Below are positions 25,001-34,791 of a stretch of 64,000 bases of DNA, piece after piece; within the stretch, counting starts at the first letter, position 1; the number at the start of each line of letters is the position of its first letter. The stretch is from Zygnema circumcarinatum SAG 698-1b (taxonomy: Eukaryota; Plantae; Zygnematophyceae), in the NCBI GenBank assembly GCA_037447605.1, contig CM074809.1:1044689-1108688 (forward strand), in the 5' to 3' direction. Below the pieces are notes generated by a model, which saw only the letters and a list, made by a program, of their open reading frames with translations, searched no databases and was not told the origin of the DNA. Both the position numbers and the translations under genes were made by a program.

Positions 25001-26049
25001 CCAGATTTCCGCTCGCAACATGATGGACCCTGAACTCCTACAAAAACTCCTATTGAACAATTTCGGTGGGCGGGCCTGCCTTAGTACCCTACTTGATGTT
25101 AGGTCTAGATAGGAAAGTTCGCTGAAGTTTTTTGGGGGTGTTTTCCTGGTTCAAGGGTTTCGGGATCATGTAAACTGAGTCCTAAAGCCTGTGCTTGCAG
25201 ACACGATTCCGGTGAAGCTGCTGCTGCAGATGGCCACTCTGTTCTATGGCTCAGGCCTTAAAAATCGCAACGGTACGGTGGAGTATAGAAAGGGACTGCG
25301 GGACTGCAATGTTCCTGTGCTCTCATTGGCCGGCGATCAGGATTGGATCTGTCCCCCCACTGCTGTCACTGGTGAGAACCACTGACCTCTCCTTTAGAGC
25401 ATTTTTTTTTTTTTCATTGAGCTGCATGGAATCGCCAGCAGGTCAGCGACTGAGCTAGAGCCAACTGTTCATAAGTCTAAGTGACGGCTGCTGTTCCTCG
25501 AATTCAATATTCATGAAGAAGATGTGCCATCTCTTTTTTCTTGCTGATCGATTTTTCCGTTCTTTGCGTTGGGACACGTCACTTTCTGGTCAGACACGTT
25601 GAAATACTTCCCAGAGGAAAAGGCCTCTTACCGGCTCTTTGGCGGAGGCCCCGATGAGCATAACTACAGCCACTACGATCTCCTTGTGGGCAAATATGTG
25701 AGTACCTTTTTTACTGAGGATTTGGAGCCTGCCCTTCATGCATAGCATCAAGTTGGCTCTCCGTTTTGTGATCCGTCTGCTCCTTTGTTCAGCCATTCAC
25801 AAGAAAATGCTTTCACCGGCCCTCCCCTTCTTAGGACTTGATGTTCTGGAGTTGTGGTGTTTACCGAGACCTAAATACGACCTATTCCAGTAATGTCTTG
25901 TGTAATGCCTGCGGTTGTGTAGCTCTTCCTCAGTTACGACTCTAAGCATTGAGGCTTTATGCCTGCTGCATGTCTTCCCTGTGCAGGCGAAGCAGGAGGT
26001 CTTCCCAGTGATCACCGACTTCGTGTTGGAGCATGATGAGTTGTCGTGA
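22025..26049 (+). CDS. Alpha/beta-fold hydrolase with an internal amphipathic helical-repeat insert
   Basis: Exons join ADELHYV...WRLALWRY|...HPVILLCGIATNAIGYDL|SLARHL..GFDTW.LEVRGAG...YDWDFD..YEDIPAA...GHSMGG...LAGDQDWICP...YSHYDLLVG|...VFPVITDFV..HD. Ser-Asp-His triad intact. Start is ATG 22025 or 22052. Confidence 0.9.
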
Positions 26050-26657
26050 TGCGAACAAAGTTTTTGAACTTCGACCAACTGAACAGTCCTGTCGACTTCT
26101 TGTATATAATTTCGGCATATCTCGGCATAGTGTTTCTTCCTGAGGAGTTTGAAGGAGGATGGGCGATGGCATCTCTGATTTCGTCTTTCTACATGCTTAC
26201 TTAAAAGCGAATGGTGACATACTTCCTGTTCAATCTCTAGTCATTTTTTTTTATAACCTGTATAGTCACTGCAACTTTTCTTGTACGGATGAACGAGGAT
26301 GTAATGTAGCCCTATTCCATGAACTGCGACTTCAAGTGTTTGGATCTGAACCCATGTTTCAATTTGTTGTTGCGGGTACGAGGCCTGCTTTCATATAAAT
26401 GGTTTAAGATTGCAGACTCGAATGCTAAGACCAGCCGCCGCCCTTTCGCGCATTACGAGACCGCACGGGGGGACGGACGGACCACGCTTCAAGGATGAGC
26501 TTTGATTTAGGCGAGAGCAAAGGTTGGTAAGCTGTGTGCTGGGGTGGGTTTGATCGGACGATCAGGAATGACCGATTTTCTACCCGCTGACATAGCTGCT
26601 GCCGGTGTAAACCGGCGACTTCCGCCCTCTACATCGCTGGGCGTTTGGTGACAACTC

Positions 26658-26765
26658 TGAAACCCTAAAAGCCTCAAACCATTAAAAACCTTAAACATCC
26701 TAAAACCCTGAAAACCCGAAAAATCTTAAGGACTCTACAACCTAAAAATCCTAGAAATCCTGAAG
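26658..26765. repeat. Degenerate telomere-like tract (AAACCCTAA variants)
   Basis: About ten degenerate units, e.g. GAAACCCTAAAA, AAAACCCTG, AAAACCCG, AAAAATCCTAG. Confidence 0.6.
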
Positions 26766-27389
26766 GGACTCCGGACTCCGAAAAGTTTCCCTTTTCTTTG
26801 CAGTCTCTGCTTCGCGCCACCTCCCTCCCCCCCCCCCTTCCCCCCTCCCCTCTCCCCTCTTGATGATGTTCTCAAAGGGATAGAGCCCTTACTAGTCTTA
26901 GTTACTCCTAGGTTTGAGGAATATGAGCGATATTACACTTATCTGAACTAGCCACATTTCATGACATCAGCCATCAGTCGGCTTTGGCCTGATAATGAAG
27001 CCAAACAACCTCGCTCACATGTAGACAACCACATCATAGGCCCTTGATGGGGAGGATTAAAAACATACACAATCTGTTTCTTTCCACATTCCTTCATCCA
27101 CATGCTTCAATTGAAGCCTTAATTTCAGTTAACGAGCCTAGTACATCTGAACTACAATTGAGTCTACTGTTAAGACGACTTCTCGTCAAATCGTGGTTAA
27201 AAAGACAATCTCAGGTAAGCCTAAAGTAAGCAACAATGAAAGTACCGAATTTCGCTCTCGTGGCTCCAAAAAGGCACAGCTAAGCCATGGCCTTAACAAG
27301 TATGGCTTCGCTTTTCGCTGCCCTGCGACCACAGTGACTCATCTAAATCCAATGTTAAAAGGAGCTTCTCGCTTCCTCTTCCTAGCTTT

Positions 27390-30069
27390 CTAGCAGCAGA
27401 CCTTCACTCCTTTCTTTTCTCTACGCTCGCTCCTCCCTCCTTCCGACCTTCCCTTCCTGTGCCCCCTCCCCCCCACCCTTGGGCTGCTCCGACTCTTATG
27501 TCCGGAGGTCCGCCTGCTCTCCCTTCCCACCTTTACTATCAGCCCCTTACTTCCGACTCGTCTCTGCTCCGATCGCTTCCTAACTCCCACCACATCAACC
27601 ACTTCTCCTCCCCTGTTTCCTTTCTCCCCTACCCGCCATTCCCCACATCTCCCACCTCTCACCTTCCTCTCTGTCCTCTCTCTCCCACCCGACACTGGCC
27701 GACCCGTCTGTGAGCTGATGCGAATCCTGCAGAAACCATCGACCAGCATCTCGCTACTGCAGCAGGGGCATCTTGGCATTCCGCAATTCTCTACGCTGAT
27801 TGGAGACACGGGAAGGCGCTCTTTCAACCCTAAACCTCCTCCTCGCGTGCTTCGTGGGCGAGAACATTTCTGTGTCACAAAATCTAAGTTTGACCAGAGA
27901 GGGAGCAGGTCGAACTCGTCCGACGAAAGGTACGCACTTCGACTCCGTCGATGCTTTTCCTTCTGTGACCCAATCCTGCTTATGGGCTGCGCATTTCCCC
28001 AAGATCGTGGTTTTGAAGCTGCCGGAGCACTTGGAGGCTGAGTGGCAGTAGCCCCCTCCTCTCCGCTGCTCCCTCCTCTCAAAGAGAAGCGGATGGACTG
28101 CAAATTTCCGAGAGAGATCGACCTCGAATGGTGCCTTTCGGAACCTTTCAGAAATTTCCGCGTTTGCGGAACATAAGCAGGCCGGTGAGGAAGAAACACC
28201 TTTGAAGGCCGAATGCTGCTGAGAAGGTCCTTGGCCCTCTGCAGGGTTCCCGGACTCCTCTGAGCTTGAAGCAGCGTGATAGCTTCAAGCTCTTCTCCCC
28301 ACGACTTCATGGCTGCCGCGTATTCAACAGCAGGTTGACCGCTCACCCAAGACGCATCGAAGAGAGGGGAGGAGAGAGGCTCGTCGGAGCTGCTTTGTGG
28401 GAAACAGGTGTCGCTCTCGTGCTCAACAAAGGAAGCCCACGTGTGTTCCAAGCTTTCGGAAGAGGGAGGGGAGTCTGCAGAGTTTGCGATGAAGGGGGGG
28501 CAGCTTCCATGGCGGGGGTGAAGCTGCCAGGCTGAGTGGGCAGCTGCAAGGACGCTCGCTGTAACCACTAAGTCCCCTGCGAGCTCGTTCAGCCCAAAGC
28601 ACATCTCTCCATCGCCTGAAGGAGGAGAAAAGGAGAGTGCGAGAGCGAGTGTGTGAGGGCAGAAAACAACGAATGATGCGGAGGAGTAAAGGCGAAGGTG
28701 GACGGAAATAGCAAGATGACCTTAGCTCTGACTCCTTTCTGAATACCCATTCTTTGAAAAAAAGGGAAAAAAACGACTCCTAACCAGCAATAGCAGTCTC
28801 CCCCCTCCCCCTTCTTTCGAGATTCCTACCCTCCATTCAAAACTGACGGTAACAATTCACATGGGCCTTCCCGCCCCCCCCCCTTCCCTCCAGCTTTAGC
28901 AGCAGCTCTTAAAACAGATGTTGCTCCTCCCTTCCCCACTCCACTGCGACATCCCATGCATTCTTCCCCCCGTCCTCAGCCCATCAAAACTAACAGTGTC
29001 TCTTGAAAAACCACGCCAACCCTAAAAACATTCCAAACCCTAAAAGCACGCAAACAAAGAAAGAAGCATAGCGGCTGCCTCCCTCACCGTTCTCCGTCGT
29101 GAGGCACGTCCGCAGCCACTCGCGAATGAGTTCCAAATTCCCGGGCAGCAGCGCGTGCACGTCCTCCACATCCCTCAGAGCTCCCGCCATTGCATCATCC
29201 GCTGCAATTCCCACCACTTTCCACGACAGGACATCTTCCTCCTCCTCCTCCTCCCCCTCCCCCTCTCCCTCTCCCACCAACCCCCTCGTCCTCTCCCTCT
29301 CTCCCACTCCCTCAGCGTCAGTCTCAGCTGCACCCTCCCCATTTCCCCTCTCCTCCCCATGCCCCTCCACTCCCTTCACTCTCTCTGCCGTCCTCTGCCC
29401 CTGCCCCTCCCCCTGCCTCTCTCCCTCCTCCTCCCCCCCTCTCTCCCTGCTCCTCCGCTTCCTCCTCCTTTTCACGGCTGCGAACACGCCCAGTGGCTTC
29501 ACGAGATAGACCTCTCCCACCCTCCGGGGCCTCTCCGCCCCCATGTCCACCACCTCCAGCGCGCCGCCATCCCCCCCCATCCCAAAGCCCTCCCGCATGT
29601 GCGTCACGTCCCCGAGCGTCTGCGGCAGCAGCCCCACGTTCCACGGCGCGTTGTGCGCAAAGGGGGCGGCGCGGCCCCCTTCGTCCTTGGCCAGCTGCAG
29701 GGGTGTGAAAGGCTCGTCCTGCGCCGCCACGTGGCGCAGCCAGGTGCCCGCAGGCGTGGTGCACACGCAGCGCAGGAGGCCGTCCGGGCCGTGCAAAGGG
29801 AGTTCGTGCCACGGCGAGACGGGCAGCCCGCCCCGCAGGACGGCCACGCGGTGCTTCAGGGACCCCGCCTGCCCGAACTCCAGCGTCGCGAGGTCCTGCT
29901 CCGCGCCGCCATGGCTGCCGCGTCGGGCCTCCACGCGCTCCGCAAGGACGGTAGCATCTTGAGGGAGGGCCAAGCGGCATGGGGAGGCCCGAATGGGAGC
30001 CTCTGCTGTGGCCATGGCGGCGTCCCCACTGGGAGGGCGGAGGGGAAGCAGGGGAGGAGCGGCAGCCAT
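27390..30069 (-). CDS. Family-I soluble inorganic pyrophosphatase homolog (plastid PPa6-type), catalytically degenerate, with long disordered C-terminal extension
   Basis: SPWHELPL...DEPFTPL...WNVGLLPQT...VKPLG...LSWKVVGI...DVEDV...PGNLELIREW. Donor AACG|GTGAGG near 29086 and acceptor TTCAG|GC near 28615 continue in frame into EMCFGL...HSAW. The 3' end is uncertain; further exons may extend to about 26510. Confidence 0.8.
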
Positions 30070-30112
30070 GGCAAGGATCTGCAGGAGGCGACATGAAGGG
30101 GTGGGCAGGAGG

Positions 30113-30210
30113 GTGCCGTACAGTTGGACAGGGTGTCGTACAGGGTGCCGTACGATTGCGTACCGTACGAAATAATGAAGGTGTACCTTCTGCCAGTAAG
30201 GTACGGTACG
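30113..30210. promoter_or_regulatory. Cluster of eight GTAC cores just upstream of the PPase-like start codon
   Basis: GCCGTACA, TCGTACA, CCGTACG, GCGTACCGTACG, GTGTACC and GGTACGGTACGG within about 100 bp. GTAC is the SBP-domain binding core; function inferred. Confidence 0.45.
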
Positions 30211-31337
30211 GTAAGAGGTTGCTGAAAGGGGAAAAATTCCAACTGGTTTGACGGATTTAGGGTTTTTATGTGGCAATTAGGACAGGGCAGTTGGCGCCGA
30301 CATTTTTTAGGGCCAATGGGCAGCCACGCCGGGCAGGACAGGGTAAAAAGTCGGCACACGAATACGTGGCAGGAGCTGCCGGAAGCGACAAGCGAATTCT
30401 TTTTTTGGTTGACCGAGAAAATGACCGAGGGGGACGAGGCCGATGAATTCAGCCGTTGGATATCCGCCACGTGACAAGAGGACAATTCTGGATGTCCCTA
30501 TGGCGAGCTGATCCTTAGGAAGTCTTTATAATTTCACTACGCGACAGAAGTTCACCGACAATGTCAACCATTCATATATTGCCACGTGGATCAGAGAGTT
30601 AGAAGTTGCCATAATAATCCAAGGCACAGCTGGCCGTACCTAACAAGACAGTTCGCAGTGGCCCTGGGCGGGAGCGTTCGTACAGGTCAGAATGCGCCAG
30701 CCGCTCAAGTTACTACCTAAACGACAAACTTTGCAGTGCGGACAAGCTTGGAGTTTCCGCGCCCGGGAACAGTCCAACTTTGACTGGCTGCAGGTCCATA
30801 TGTTCCCACGAAACCCGGAGGGGCCGCGATCTGTACGGAGAGGGAGATCCCAGATCCAGTCTCTTTGACCGAACCGCCGCTGCCGGCAAGGATGTACGGA
30901 TGACAGCTCTAATACGCCAAAACGAGCCGCCCGCATGGCCGCCCGCCCGGCCGGTCGTCTGGGGCTGCTCGAGCGCATGGCATGGCATGGCATGGCATGG
31001 CATGGCCGGGCAGTGGGGCTTGGGGTGATGGGGCACGTCCCCACTGCTCTAGGCGGGCGTGTTCGCACTGTCCATGGAAGCACCCATGTTGTTGTTGGTT
31101 GCGAGACGGTTCGCGGCATGGCTCAGTTCACAACGACTTTGCGCGTTTGTGGGGCCAATCATGGGAGGGTGCGCTTGGCAAAGTGGTCCATTGGATCAGC
31201 CATAGTAATGGTTGCGAGCCGTTGAATCGCGAGCCAGGCAACCATTGCCAATGGTTGGAACAATGGATTTAAAGGTTGGCGTCGAGCCGAATCAACCATT
31301 GCCAATGGTCGCAAGACTCGCTAGTCGCCATTGGGTG

Positions 31338-31525
31338 ACAATGGTTGCCAGTCCAACCAATGCTGTCCAATGGTTGCCAGTCCAACCAATGCGGTCCAAT
31401 GGTTGCCAGTCCAACCAATGCTGTCCAATGGTTGCCAGTCCAACCAATGCTGTCCAATGGTTGCCAGTCCAACCAATGCTGTCCAATGGTTGCCAGTCCA
31501 ACCAATGCTGTCCAATGGTTGCCAG
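31338..31525. repeat. 29-bp minisatellite, about 6.4 copies (ATGGTTGCCAGTCCAACCAATGCTGTCCA)
   Basis: Unit starts at 31341, 31370, 31399, 31428, 31457, 31486 and 31515, with one substitution. Degenerate CCAATGG sequence continues upstream to about 31190. Confidence 0.97.
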
Positions 31526-31593
31526 CCCTTGAGCAGAGGAAGCTGCCTTCTCCGCCACCAGGCACCTCCCTCCCCTCCCTCCCGGAGAACGCC

Positions 31594-34500
31594 ATGTCCG
31601 CCTGCCTCCCGCTCCACCACCTCCTCACCACAGCGCGCCACGTGGCAGTCCGTGGGGCCTTCCTCTCCGTCGATTTCGCAGCCTCAAGCAGCCGGGCAGC
31701 CCTGAGAAGGCGGGCCCTGCAGCAGGCTCTGCGCGCTCCCTCCCGGGCCTGTCCTCGCGTGGGCGCGGCTGGGTCTGCTGCTCGCGCGCTCTCTCTCTCG
31801 CCCTCGGCAGCCATGGCCGCGACCTCTCCCGCTCTGTCGGCTGTTCTGTGGGAGAGGTGCCAGAGGGAAGCCATGGGTGCTCTTCACCACCCCTTTGTGG
31901 TGGGGCTGGCGGCCAACACCCTGCCTCTGGACGCCTTTCAGCACTATGTTGCTCAAGACGCTTTCTTTCTCTCTGCTTTTGCAAAAGCGTAAGGTCTTTT
32001 TGTCTGCCTCAATGATGAGAATTTGCATTTGTCAATCTTCGCTGAAGGGGTTTTCGCATGCACCCGGCGTTTTTTTCTGTGATTTTTCGTACACTTGAAG
32101 GCATTGAAGTTTTTTTTGGGTGTGTTTGGTACTGTCAGTTACGAGCTGGCTAAGGAGTCGGTGAGGGATGACCACGCGAAGAAGGTCCTCGAAGAACAGA
32201 GAGCGGCTGTTGAGCGCGAACTTCAGCTCCATGGTGCATATGCGGAGGTATTGCAACACATTTGCTTTCCATTGCTGAACGTTTCTTCGTTTGGGGCCAC
32301 ATTCCATGGAAAGCCTTCAGCTCGGAACCTGCATCCGACAACCTCTGTGTTTTGAAGAGGTTGCTTCCTGTTGAGAAAAATGCGAGGCTGTTTATGACAA
32401 ATTGCAAAATGCGCAGAATCCGTTAGACGAAGATAGCTGAAGGATGTGTAAGCACTCTCCTTTGTGTCCACCGAATTTATCGGGTTAGAGTTGATAGACT
32501 TAACTTTTGAGAATCCGAGCTCCAAGAGTTGGGTTAAATGATGTTCCTACAGCCCTTTAGTCGTTTTTGGGTTGTGGCTGTAATTTTTTCCTCTATTCTT
32601 GACACATTTTCGTCACAGTCTTGGGGCGTTGATCTCGCGACACATGGCACGCCGAGCTCTGCCACTCTTGCTTACACTTCATTCCTCCTCAGAACAGCCG
32701 GAGAGAACGATCCTGACATAGTAGCACTTTCAGCGGAGAAGGAGGGGGAGCTGAAGGAGAGGAGAGGGAGAGGAGAAGGAGAGGCTTCAGAAGAAATTCG
32801 GGGGACCACAAGGGCAGCAGAAGTTGTGGCAGCCATGGTGCCCTGCATGCGCTTGTATGCCTTTCTGGGGAAGGAGCTGAAGTGGGCTTCCAAGCTGCTT
32901 GAATTGGAGGACACGAATCGATATGAAGAGTGGATGGAGACTTATGCATCGGAGGGATTTGAGGTGAGAAAAGCCTTGAGCGTTTCAGTTAAAATGATTC
33001 AGCTAACAGGTGCAGCTTAACTTTTTTGGACATTGTAATGGGATCTCCTCTTGTAAGAGGGGAAGTGGAATGGATTGAAGAAATAAGGACTCGTACAGTT
33101 GCTCTCGGATAACCCGGCAGACTTTATTGCTGCACCTTCTGAGTGGCTGTTGCAGGCATCAGCCCTGCAACTAGAGACGTTGTTGGACCGCTTGAGTGAA
33201 GGTGCAAGTGAAGAAGTTAGAGAGAAATTGTTGATGTTGTACAGGAGGGCCATGGAGTTGGAAGTTGCATTTTTCGCAGCGCAACCCATACCTCAAGGGA
33301 TGAGGGCACCCTTTGCGATGGGAGGAGCAGGGGATTCTAAAGAAGGCATCTCTCGTAGAGAACTTGTTTTTGCTTGTGACTTTGATTCCACCTGTACGGC
33401 AGAAGATTCAAGTGTCCTTTTACCAGAGCTGGGTTTCATTGCAAGTGAAGCGGAGGGAGAAGGTGCCGATCAGTTGAGTGAGGGAGAGAAGAGGAGGAGC
33501 AGGTGGGAGGAGGTGGCCAATCGCTATGCAGTGGACTTCAAGGAGTTGCTGGATAGCTATCTCTCAAGCAGGGGATCAGGGTTGGACACCAACGAAAGTA
33601 ATGAGCCTTTCAGCAGTCTGAGAAAGTTCCTGGAAAACTTAGCTGAGTTCGAGGTAGAGGCAAACACGAGATTGGAGGCCTCTGAAGTTCTAAGAGGAAT
33701 AAAGAGAGATGACATCGTGAGGAAGGGGAGCCAAACGGCTCTTCGAGAGGGGTGTGGGAGAGTGCTTACGCTTTTGCGTGAGGAGGGAATTCACATCAAC
33801 ATCATTTCAGTGGCATGGAGTCGGAGCTTCATTCGTGGGTCTCTCACCCACGGGTTGGGAGAGGTCACTTTGGCAGGTAACGTGCCATATTTCAAATGTG
33901 TTCTTTGAGGCTCGCAGGGTATAGACTGCATTGAGTGATACTTTCATACGGCTCAATCATGTATTTGAAGATCATTGCATATCGTCAGAACCTCAGTACG
34001 TCCCTCCTCCATCAATTGCCATCCCGTTCCAGTCTATTTCTTCTCTCCTCCCCACCTTGCCCTCCCTCCCTTCTCTCTCGCGTTCCCTCCTCCCCGTCCT
34101 CCCCCCCTTCCATTCGCCTCCCGCCCCCCTCACTCCATTCATTCTCCAACCCCCCCCTTCTCTTCGACCCTCTACCCATCTCCCACCCCTCCCTCTCCCT
34201 CTCTCTTCCCTCACCCTTCATCTTTGAGAGGTTCCAATACTGCTGCAGAGTGCATGTGACCCCTCAACCTATGGGCCCTTTCATCCTTATCCACCCATCA
34301 TAATTCGGCATTTGTTAAGACAGAGAAGCTGCAGCCATTGGTGTGTCCTGTCTTGTAAGCCATTTCTGCCAGGTGTGGATATCCAATCGAATGAGCTTGA
34401 GTTTAACTCCAATGGCGTCTCTACCGGAAAAGTCGTACGGTCCCTTCAAACTGCCATCGATAAGGAGAAAGCCTTTTCCAAGTTATGTGCGACAAATGAG

Positions 34501-34791
34501 CCGGGGAGGACCCATGTCTTTGTGGGAGACAGTGTCACGGATGTGCTCGCCCTTCTGCGTGCGGATGTGGGAGTGATAGTGGGAGAGAATCAGACTTTGG
34601 CAAAGGTACTGGACACTGTCAGCGATATTCAGGTGAGGCCTCTCCTCTCTGCGTCCATTTCCAGAGCACGTGCAGAGAGTAGTAGAGAGAGCAGCCCATC
34701 GCGGAGAATTCTGTACAAGGCGAGGGGCTGGGAGGAGATAGAAGCGTTTTTAGGGTTGGTCGAGTGGACGGATGTTCGCGGCGAAGCTTGA
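31594..34791 (+). CDS. TH2: Bifunctional TenA/HAD thiamine monophosphate phosphatase
   Basis: TenA domain (HPFV...FQHYVAQDAFFL..F...PCMRLYAFLG...Y..W..Y...MELEVAFF) plus HAD motifs CDFDSTCT and FVGDSVTD. Two in-frame ATGs at 31594 and 31813. Confidence 0.93.
33990..34215 (+). repeat. CT-rich low-complexity tract in a TH2 intron
   Basis: Pyrimidine run between exons. Confidence 0.8.

Follow-up and report, generated by a model that had tools for sequence, protein, structure and literature searches.

The stretch of DNA analysed here, hereafter the window, comprises 64,000 nucleotides of the conjugating green alga Zygnema circumcarinatum SAG 698-1b (assembly GCA_037447605.1, contig CM074809.1, positions 1,044,689 to 1,108,688 of the forward strand), and all positions given below count from its first letter. 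On its minus strand lies a gene of two exons, 982 + 1223 nt or 735 codons in all, whose product begins with an N-terminal stretch of about 59 residues, continues as a head that resembles soluble inorganic pyrophosphatases (PPases) with most of the catalytic residues replaced, and ends in a long tail; we call it the pseudo-PPase gene (Table 1). A first-pass annotation, made from the letters of the window, had placed it at 29086-30069, which is exon 1 to within two bases, and had described an open, spliced frame, which RNA-derived contigs bear out with the splice joint in four sequencing runs. The gene reaches well beyond what that annotation described: it continues into a tail exon of 407 codons, it carries an insert of 86 residues in the head, and it belongs to a large family.

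Table 1. Features of the pseudo-PPase locus and its divergent neighbour (window coordinates).
Feature	Position	Strand	Basis or content
Exon 1, coding part	29088..30069	minus	327 codons + first base of junction codon; open reading frame, RNA-derived contigs
Intron 1	28616..29087	minus	472 nt, GT..AG, phase 1; pyrimidine tract + CAG at 3' side
Exon 2	from 28615; stop 27390-27392	minus	in-phase 407 further codons
Charged low-complexity insert, residues ~200-279	29233..29472	minus	within the hairpin where active enzymes have D147/D152
Last PPase-fold helix (FGLNELAGD...AAAHSAW)	28524..28615	minus	start of exon 2; predicted helical
Tail, ~377 codons + stop	27390..28523	minus	open frame, no inner joint
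Probable 3' untranslated region, end not fixed	27073..27389	minus	record 23 of run X6 continues to 27073
Transcribed upstream stretch	30070..30967	minus	contigs of X2, X3 and X6 unbroken from exon 1 to 30967
TH2-like gene	31566-34788	plus	TenA/THI-4 Pfam match at 31876-31989, then HAD-like motifs

The start codon at 30069 stands in the context GCCATGG, and exon 1 closes at 29088 with the donor G/GTGAGG. Four public runs from three studies, X1, X2, X3 and X6, have contigs with the joint 28614/29087 (cut +1; CT..AC in plus-strand and GT..AG in coding-strand reading), and in X6 the exons are covered to a depth of 50-58 and intron 1 to a depth of 0. Because the canonical intron-less form occurs in all four runs and intron depth is zero in X6, the contigs are most simply complementary DNA. 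Within exon 2 the run contigs show no minus-strand joint, and X6 record 23 runs unbroken from 27073 to 28614. The position and phase of the intron are identical in two relatives, L002 and L003. Inside the intron, at 29007-29055, lie two to three units of the AAACCCT(A) type, resembling the plant telomere repeat or 'telo-box'.

The two exons were searched and folded separately, and the head model accordingly covers residues 60-327 of exon 1, without the last helix, which is encoded in exon 2. The head matches Pfam family PF00719 at 35.2 bits (cut-off 23.5; E 1.3e-8), phmmer against PDB finds eukaryotic family I PPases in two pieces that flank the insert (E 1.5e-15), and BLASTP aligns it with P0157, an active chloroplast-type PPase from Lonicera, at E 7e-30 and 29% identity over the head. 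An AlphaFold model built on an alignment of 63 rows has a mean predicted local distance difference test score (pLDDT) of 85.4, above 93 in the core and 51-56 in the insert. Its best 50 Foldseek matches in PDB are all family I PPases, with those of Toxoplasma, yeast, Schistosoma and human leading and E values down to 5e-14; the fold of these enzymes is a barrel core with two C-terminal helices. The first 30 residues of exon 2 align colinearly with residues 261-284 of P0157, weakly when taken alone (E 0.09); in L002 and L003, too, the last-helix motif comes after this intron. On this evidence, the head (about residues 60-360) keeps the family I fold of the plastid PPa6/yeast type.

The first-pass annotation had summarised this protein as a fold kept and an active site dismantled, a description that agrees with both the modelled fold and the residues lost. 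The seven motif changes it listed (VEIP to CTTP, AKME to LRHV, KLRYY to RAAPF, WNYG to WNVG, GDNDPVD to GDGGALE, DEGELDWK to ..DVLSWK and RDYK to RTCL) are all reproduced in the BLASTP alignment with P0157; the structural motifs SPWH, FTP, GLLPQT, VKPL and DVEDV are retained, and FGL is located in exon 2. The alignment with PF00719 and the phylogeny that it had proposed as a check place the domain above threshold and the protein inside a clade made up entirely of degenerate members.

The extent of the dismantling was read from 173 domain segments of a profile search, aligned to one hidden Markov model, at thirteen catalytic columns in yeast numbering (E48 K56 E58 R78 Y89 Y93 D115 D117 D120 D152 K154 Y192 K193). 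Among the rows classed as active, 29 of 36 read EKERYYDDDDKYK exactly; in the remaining seven, one or two columns deviate or the last two are missing. The pseudo-PPase reads TRVAFVDGESKCL, with two residues identical (D115 and K154) and eleven changed, three of them conservatively (K56R, Y89F, D120E) and eight radically (E48T, E58V, R78A, Y93V, D117G, D152S, Y192C, K193L). D147 is replaced by Lys, followed by the insert, and the D-x-D-P-x-D metal signature, DNDPVD in P0157, has become DGGALE. Family I PPases use D117 as the general base and hold their metals with E48, D115, D120, D147 and D152. The head of the pseudo-PPase is without the general base D117, without the metal ligands E48, E58, D147 and D152, and without the phosphate binders R78, Y93, Y192 and K193. 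The Foldseek list includes yeast variant structures (E48D, Y93F, D115E, D117E, D120E/N, D152E and R78K), and because such structures exist, these positions were evidently chosen for study as active-site residues. Given the established family I mechanism, the loss of these residues predicts that the head cannot hydrolyse pyrophosphate in the known way.

The hairpin that closes the active site in working enzymes has been replaced by a long loop. The spacing from the Phe of KPLG.F to the Trp of WK is 86 residues in the pseudo-PPase, where the family has a median of 10 and active enzymes have 9, and it is the largest among 120 degenerate domain rows compared. The insert opens with the basic cluster KRRRKRR, continues in runs of Gly and Glu, and is encoded by a patchwork of CT/GA-rich simple repeats. 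We considered that it might be an unrecognised intron; this is ruled out by mRNA contigs in which it is colinear (X2 record 12 and X6 record 23), one of which also carries the spliced joint. KRRRKRR resembles a classical nuclear localisation signal (NLS), and a nuclear location of the protein is possible on that ground.

Beyond the last PPase helix, the tail is rich in Ser, Arg and Gly and closes with a basic stretch followed by -VCC. It is predicted to be mostly disordered except for one helical hairpin (mean pLDDT 39, from a single-sequence fold and hence weak evidence), and it matches no Pfam family. Elsewhere in the family, seven of the 62 tails (P0008, P0012, P0013, P0014, P0017, P0086 and P0105) contain the pattern [RK][RK]x[VIL]SF, whereas shuffled tails would give 0.22 (maximum 2); all but one of these seven have it at most about 30 residues from the C-terminus. 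Judged by its form, this is a candidate PP1-docking site of the RVxF type with a phosphorylatable Ser, and part of the family plausibly docks PP1. By the same motif criterion the Zygnema member does not: neither this pattern nor the PP1-docking motif [RK]-x(0,1)-[VI]-{P}-[FW] has a match in its tail, the nearest approach being RSISL, with Leu for Phe. No 14-3-3 motifs were found in the tail, and its 12 RxxS sites, where composition predicts about 6, are an excess too weak to build on. The very end of the tail (27393-27420) is a strongly basic stretch plus -VCC, an ending found in no other family member examined; it could be a lipidation or membrane-contact signal.

The size of the family to which the pseudo-PPase belongs emerged from exhaustive searching. 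Word-index protein searches returned four similar proteins only, the candidate list being crowded by low-complexity words and thousands of active PPases, and an ESM Atlas look-up returned ordinary PPase clusters only. When 1.84 billion representatives were searched exhaustively with a profile, 1700 matches reached E<=0.001 and 113 reached E<=1e-30. The 150 best-scoring proteins of that search contribute 156 near-full domain rows, 120 of them degenerate, and these top matches hold more than 100 clusters of degenerate proteins at 50% identity. The named degenerate members, a minority, come only from Closterium (four strains) and Mesotaenium endlicherianum, the remainder being EukProt transcripts, Logan contigs and metagenome contigs; the best-scoring named active proteins come from Mesotaenium, Spirogloea, Riccia, Ananas and Camellia, the Ananas entry being labelled 'soluble inorganic pyrophosphatase 6, chloroplastic-like'. 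Full-length family transcripts mostly encode 700-870 residues, with an N-terminal head and a tail without a Pfam domain, and the pseudo-PPase, at 735 residues, is built alike.

These degenerate proteins share a history. In a quick tree, 109 degenerate rows including the pseudo-PPase fall on one side of a branch with a support of 90 in the SH-like approximate likelihood ratio test (SH-aLRT). In a careful IQ-TREE tree of 97 rows, all 49 sampled clade rows, again including the pseudo-PPase, form one clade (ultrafast bootstrap, UFBoot, 100; SH-aLRT 99) whose stem measures 0.35 changes per site; a repeat of P0005 with a long branch left the main clade in this tree. Over 103 clade rows, E48, D117 and D152 are each absent from the five commonest residues at their own columns, the typical states being T/K, R/G/S and S/A/T. 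The pattern of loss that characterises the clade (E48, R78, D117, D152 and Y192/K193) is fully present in the pseudo-PPase. These data fit one ancient loss of catalysis followed by radiation. In the sequence of events that we propose, a plastid-type (PPa6-like) PPase gene would have been duplicated, probably inside the conjugating green algae or at their base; a single loss of the catalytic residues in the resulting clade would have been followed by a radiation in which purifying selection preserved the fold. Rooting the degenerate clade inside the streptophyte PPa6 group was tried and set aside: the sister node in question reaches only 57/82, and the tree has no non-plant outgroup.

Several other members of the wider family are unusual in their own right. 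In a metagenome copy at 1425-2167 of locus L004, 73% identical to P0001, a frameshift separates the N-terminal part from the head, the donor is GC instead of GT, and two residues that are otherwise invariant have changed (W to S in IREW and G to C in NIGL); this copy probably belongs to a relative and is in decay. P0005 (5113 aa, NCBI source, on a contig of 18.7 kb) is a predicted giant with 18-19 tandem degenerate PPase-like domains on long branches. P0018, P0036 and P0048, from JGI metagenomes, have three or four tandem PPase domains with all or nearly all catalytic residues kept, an unusual form since PPases are normally single-domain proteins.

Not every feature of the old pocket has been erased across the clade, which raises the question of whether the remodelled site still performs some chemistry, on a different substrate or metal, or binds a ligand as a sensor of pyrophosphate or phosphate type. 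Charged pocket positions do persist in the clade: E58 is retained in 71 of 102 rows and K154 in 72 of 102, D120 appears as Glu in 66 of 103, Cys stands at 192 in 51 of 98, and position 56 is basic in about half. The pseudo-PPase itself has R56, D115, E120, K154 and C192. In this protein, however, E58 has additionally been lost (to Val), only 2 of the 6 phosphate-holding residues survive in any form, and the hairpin that would close the site has given way to a disordered loop; across the family, the pocket residues vary too widely from member to member to fit one conserved ligand. We consider a chemical or sensory role of the pocket unlikely.

The apparent derivation of the clade from the PPa6-type lineage suggests another function, in which the pseudo-PPase would regulate the active plastid enzyme directly, by forming a pair in which it has a dominant-negative or a targeting role. 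A loose alignment connects its N-terminal stretch with the presequence region of a chloroplast PPase, and many pseudoenzymes regulate their active paralogues (review PMC11266112). Against such pairing, the more than 100 divergent clusters, each with its own tail, exceed the number of regulators that one enzyme would need, and KRRRKRR points to the nucleus, not the plastid. Plastid-type PPases of photosynthetic eukaryotes have moreover been reported to be monomers. Such a regulator seems to us quite improbable.

Whatever its function, the gene is not a pseudogene, just as the first-pass annotation had held. The frame is open over 735 codons with no lesion of any kind (no frameshift, stop, lost splice site or lost intron), and the tail frame of 407 codons compares with a maximum of 266 in 2000 shuffles. 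At positions conserved in at least 80% of 45 other degenerate members, the pseudo-PPase keeps 35 of 38. The GC content of third codon positions is 0.84 in the head versus about 0.5 for GC in the intron. The ratio of nonsynonymous to synonymous substitution rates (dN/dS), a check that the annotation had itself suggested, is 0.48 against L002 and 0.44 against L003; with dS near saturation in all pairs involving the window gene, these ratios are upper-bound hints only. Between L002 and L004 it is 0.32. With spliced transcripts in four runs and a place inside the degenerate clade, the gene has the marks of one that is kept. The gene shows none of the signs of a unitary or processed pseudogene: the 735 codons are free of lesions, and the genomic DNA has an intron that is spliced out of the RNA.

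There is still the case of a young, decaying copy that is transcribed and whose frame happens to be open by chance. The tail, with its weak codon signal and lack of relatives, could be read in this way, as could the simple-repeat expansion in the head, the frameshift and altered conserved residues of the related copy L004 from another organism, and the plus-strand transcript that overlaps the tail exon. A tail frame longer than any in 2000 shuffles within an open frame of 735 codons, the conserved positions, the strong third-position signal of the head, correct splicing in four runs and dN/dS below 0.5 all speak against it, and they make recent decay very improbable.

Overall, the locus holds an expressed, spliced two-exon gene for a protein of 735 residues. 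We read this protein as a retained, non-catalytic pseudoenzyme and, on the strength of sequence and transcript evidence, assign that reading a probability of about 0.7. Several observations weigh against it. The run types are not registered as RNA. The tail shows no similarity to anything among 152 family proteins and no tblastn match in related loci, other family tails being likewise mutually dissimilar past the last PPase helix. Its translation is inferred from the open frame alone, with a weak codon-position signal (GC 0.55-0.62 at all three positions), and, as it is without the [RK][RK]x[VIL]SF found enriched in some relatives, it does not point to a partner for an adaptor. The active Mesotaenium and Spirogloea enzymes are sister to the degenerate clade with the weak support given above (57/82). 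Finally, R56, D115, E120 and K154 stay in the pocket, so that a different chemistry or ligand is conceivable.

If the pseudo-PPase is indeed such a retained pseudoenzyme, the mechanism that we find most attractive is that of an adaptor or scaffold protein. The head, still folded, would bind partners without catalysis, and docking would be regulated through the tail, which is long, disordered and rich in Ser and Arg; in place of the former active-site hairpin stands the charged loop with its NLS-like KRRRKRR start. The first-pass annotation had spoken of a retained non-catalytic scaffold or sensor; of this, retention stands, loss of activity is what the residues predict, and a scaffold or sensor role goes further than the data themselves. 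We hold the adaptor mechanism specifically to be tentative, about half as probable as the retained pseudoenzyme as such. A bolder extension, which we regard as doubtful, is that dead PPase heads have become lineage-specific signalling adaptors in the closest algal relatives of land plants, with a subset targeting PP1 through the C-terminal RVxF-type motif, and that the Zygnema copy has diverged from these, is possibly nuclear, and uses a charged, NLS-bearing display loop and a partner of its own.

In comparison with known proteins, the nearest active group in the tree is that of the PPa6-type chloroplast PPases (Arabidopsis PPa6 and Chlamydomonas PPA1; here P0157 of Lonicera, P0085 of Ananas, P0074 of Mesotaenium and P0087 of Spirogloea). 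With these the pseudo-PPase has in common its ancestry, the fold, an N-terminal extension and the colinear motifs SPWH, FTP, LLPQT, VKPLG, WK and PG.L..IR.W; it is set apart by the 11 changed residues of 13, the 86-residue loop, the tail of about 377 residues and an activity that is expected to be nil. Yeast IPP1 and human PPA1 (1E9G, 1WGJ, 6C45) are the best structural matches, with Foldseek E of about 1e-12 to 1e-13 and a TM score of 0.6 despite the disordered insert, at 20-21% identity; unlike the pseudo-PPase they are active, form homodimers, have the full set of 13 residues and end without a tail. Its degenerate relatives (Closterium CAI5466163.1, CAI7838725.1 and CAI7803755.1, Mesotaenium ME000420S07042 and ME000191S02480, and EukProt transcripts) share the losses of E48, R78, D117, D152, Y192 and K193, the change of Y192 to Cys, and the combination of a head with a long tail. 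The pseudo-PPase differs from them in the further loss of E58 and in having by far the largest hairpin insert, and from the group of P0008, P0012, P0013, P0014, P0017, P0086 and P0105 in missing the RVxF-like motif at the C-terminus. In broader terms, the retained fold, lost catalysis, purifying selection and frequent fusion to docking regions are those of pseudoenzymes in general, including pseudokinases, STYX-type pseudophosphatases and pseudopeptidases.

Soluble pyrophosphatases are regarded as uniform housekeeping enzymes, and in the literature searched we found no description of this degenerate family or of any pyrophosphatase-derived pseudoenzyme. All of its named members come from the Zygnematophyceae, the sister lineage of land plants, and they would represent a substantial lineage-specific invention, one that could bear on how signalling networks were assembled shortly before plants moved to land. 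To this picture the present locus adds an RNA-supported gene model and strong support for the clade having arisen once, together with a weakly supported link to PPa6-type enzymes. It also adds an extreme variant, carrying the loop insert and lacking the PP1 motif, in which the head tolerates replacement of the old active-site hairpin.

The ends of the pseudo-PPase transcript are less sharply drawn than its splicing. The 3' end is not fixed because contigs do not mark where an RNA ends and carry no strand, and a plus-strand transcript overlaps. On the 5' side, the transcribed stretch upstream of the start codon is possibly a long 5' leader or a separate transcript; contigs of X1 end near 30053-30245, and a loose end at 30245 is found in three runs. 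At 30245 and again at 29719, contigs of two or three runs match the window rightward only, their left parts being unrelated and found nowhere in the window, and neither position has a canonical splice site. A second haplotype, a structural variant or a paralogue with the same 5' half could account for these breaks.

The overlapping plus-strand transcript is itself spliced. Within 26400-28616, the GT..AG joints 26522/27733 (X2) and 27930/28243 (X3) place it antisense to the tail exon. It probably belongs to a convergent gene with alpha/beta-hydrolase-like frames at about 25179-25742, of which it would form a long, spliced 3' end. On the other side, the head-to-head TH2 neighbour noted in the first-pass annotation is real and divergent: besides the TenA match, HAD-phosphatase-like motifs DFDSTC and GDSVTD occur in plus-strand frames at 33087-33905 and 34228-34788, and an intron at 31989-32138 is backed by a loose end mapping to 32139. 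A functional link between the pseudo-PPase and TH2 through a common promoter is unsupported, because other genes flank the Closterium relative. A near-perfect tandem repeat with a period of 29, 6.4 copies and 98% matches occupies 31339-31525 between the divergent pair, just upstream of the point at which contigs of the TH2-like gene start.

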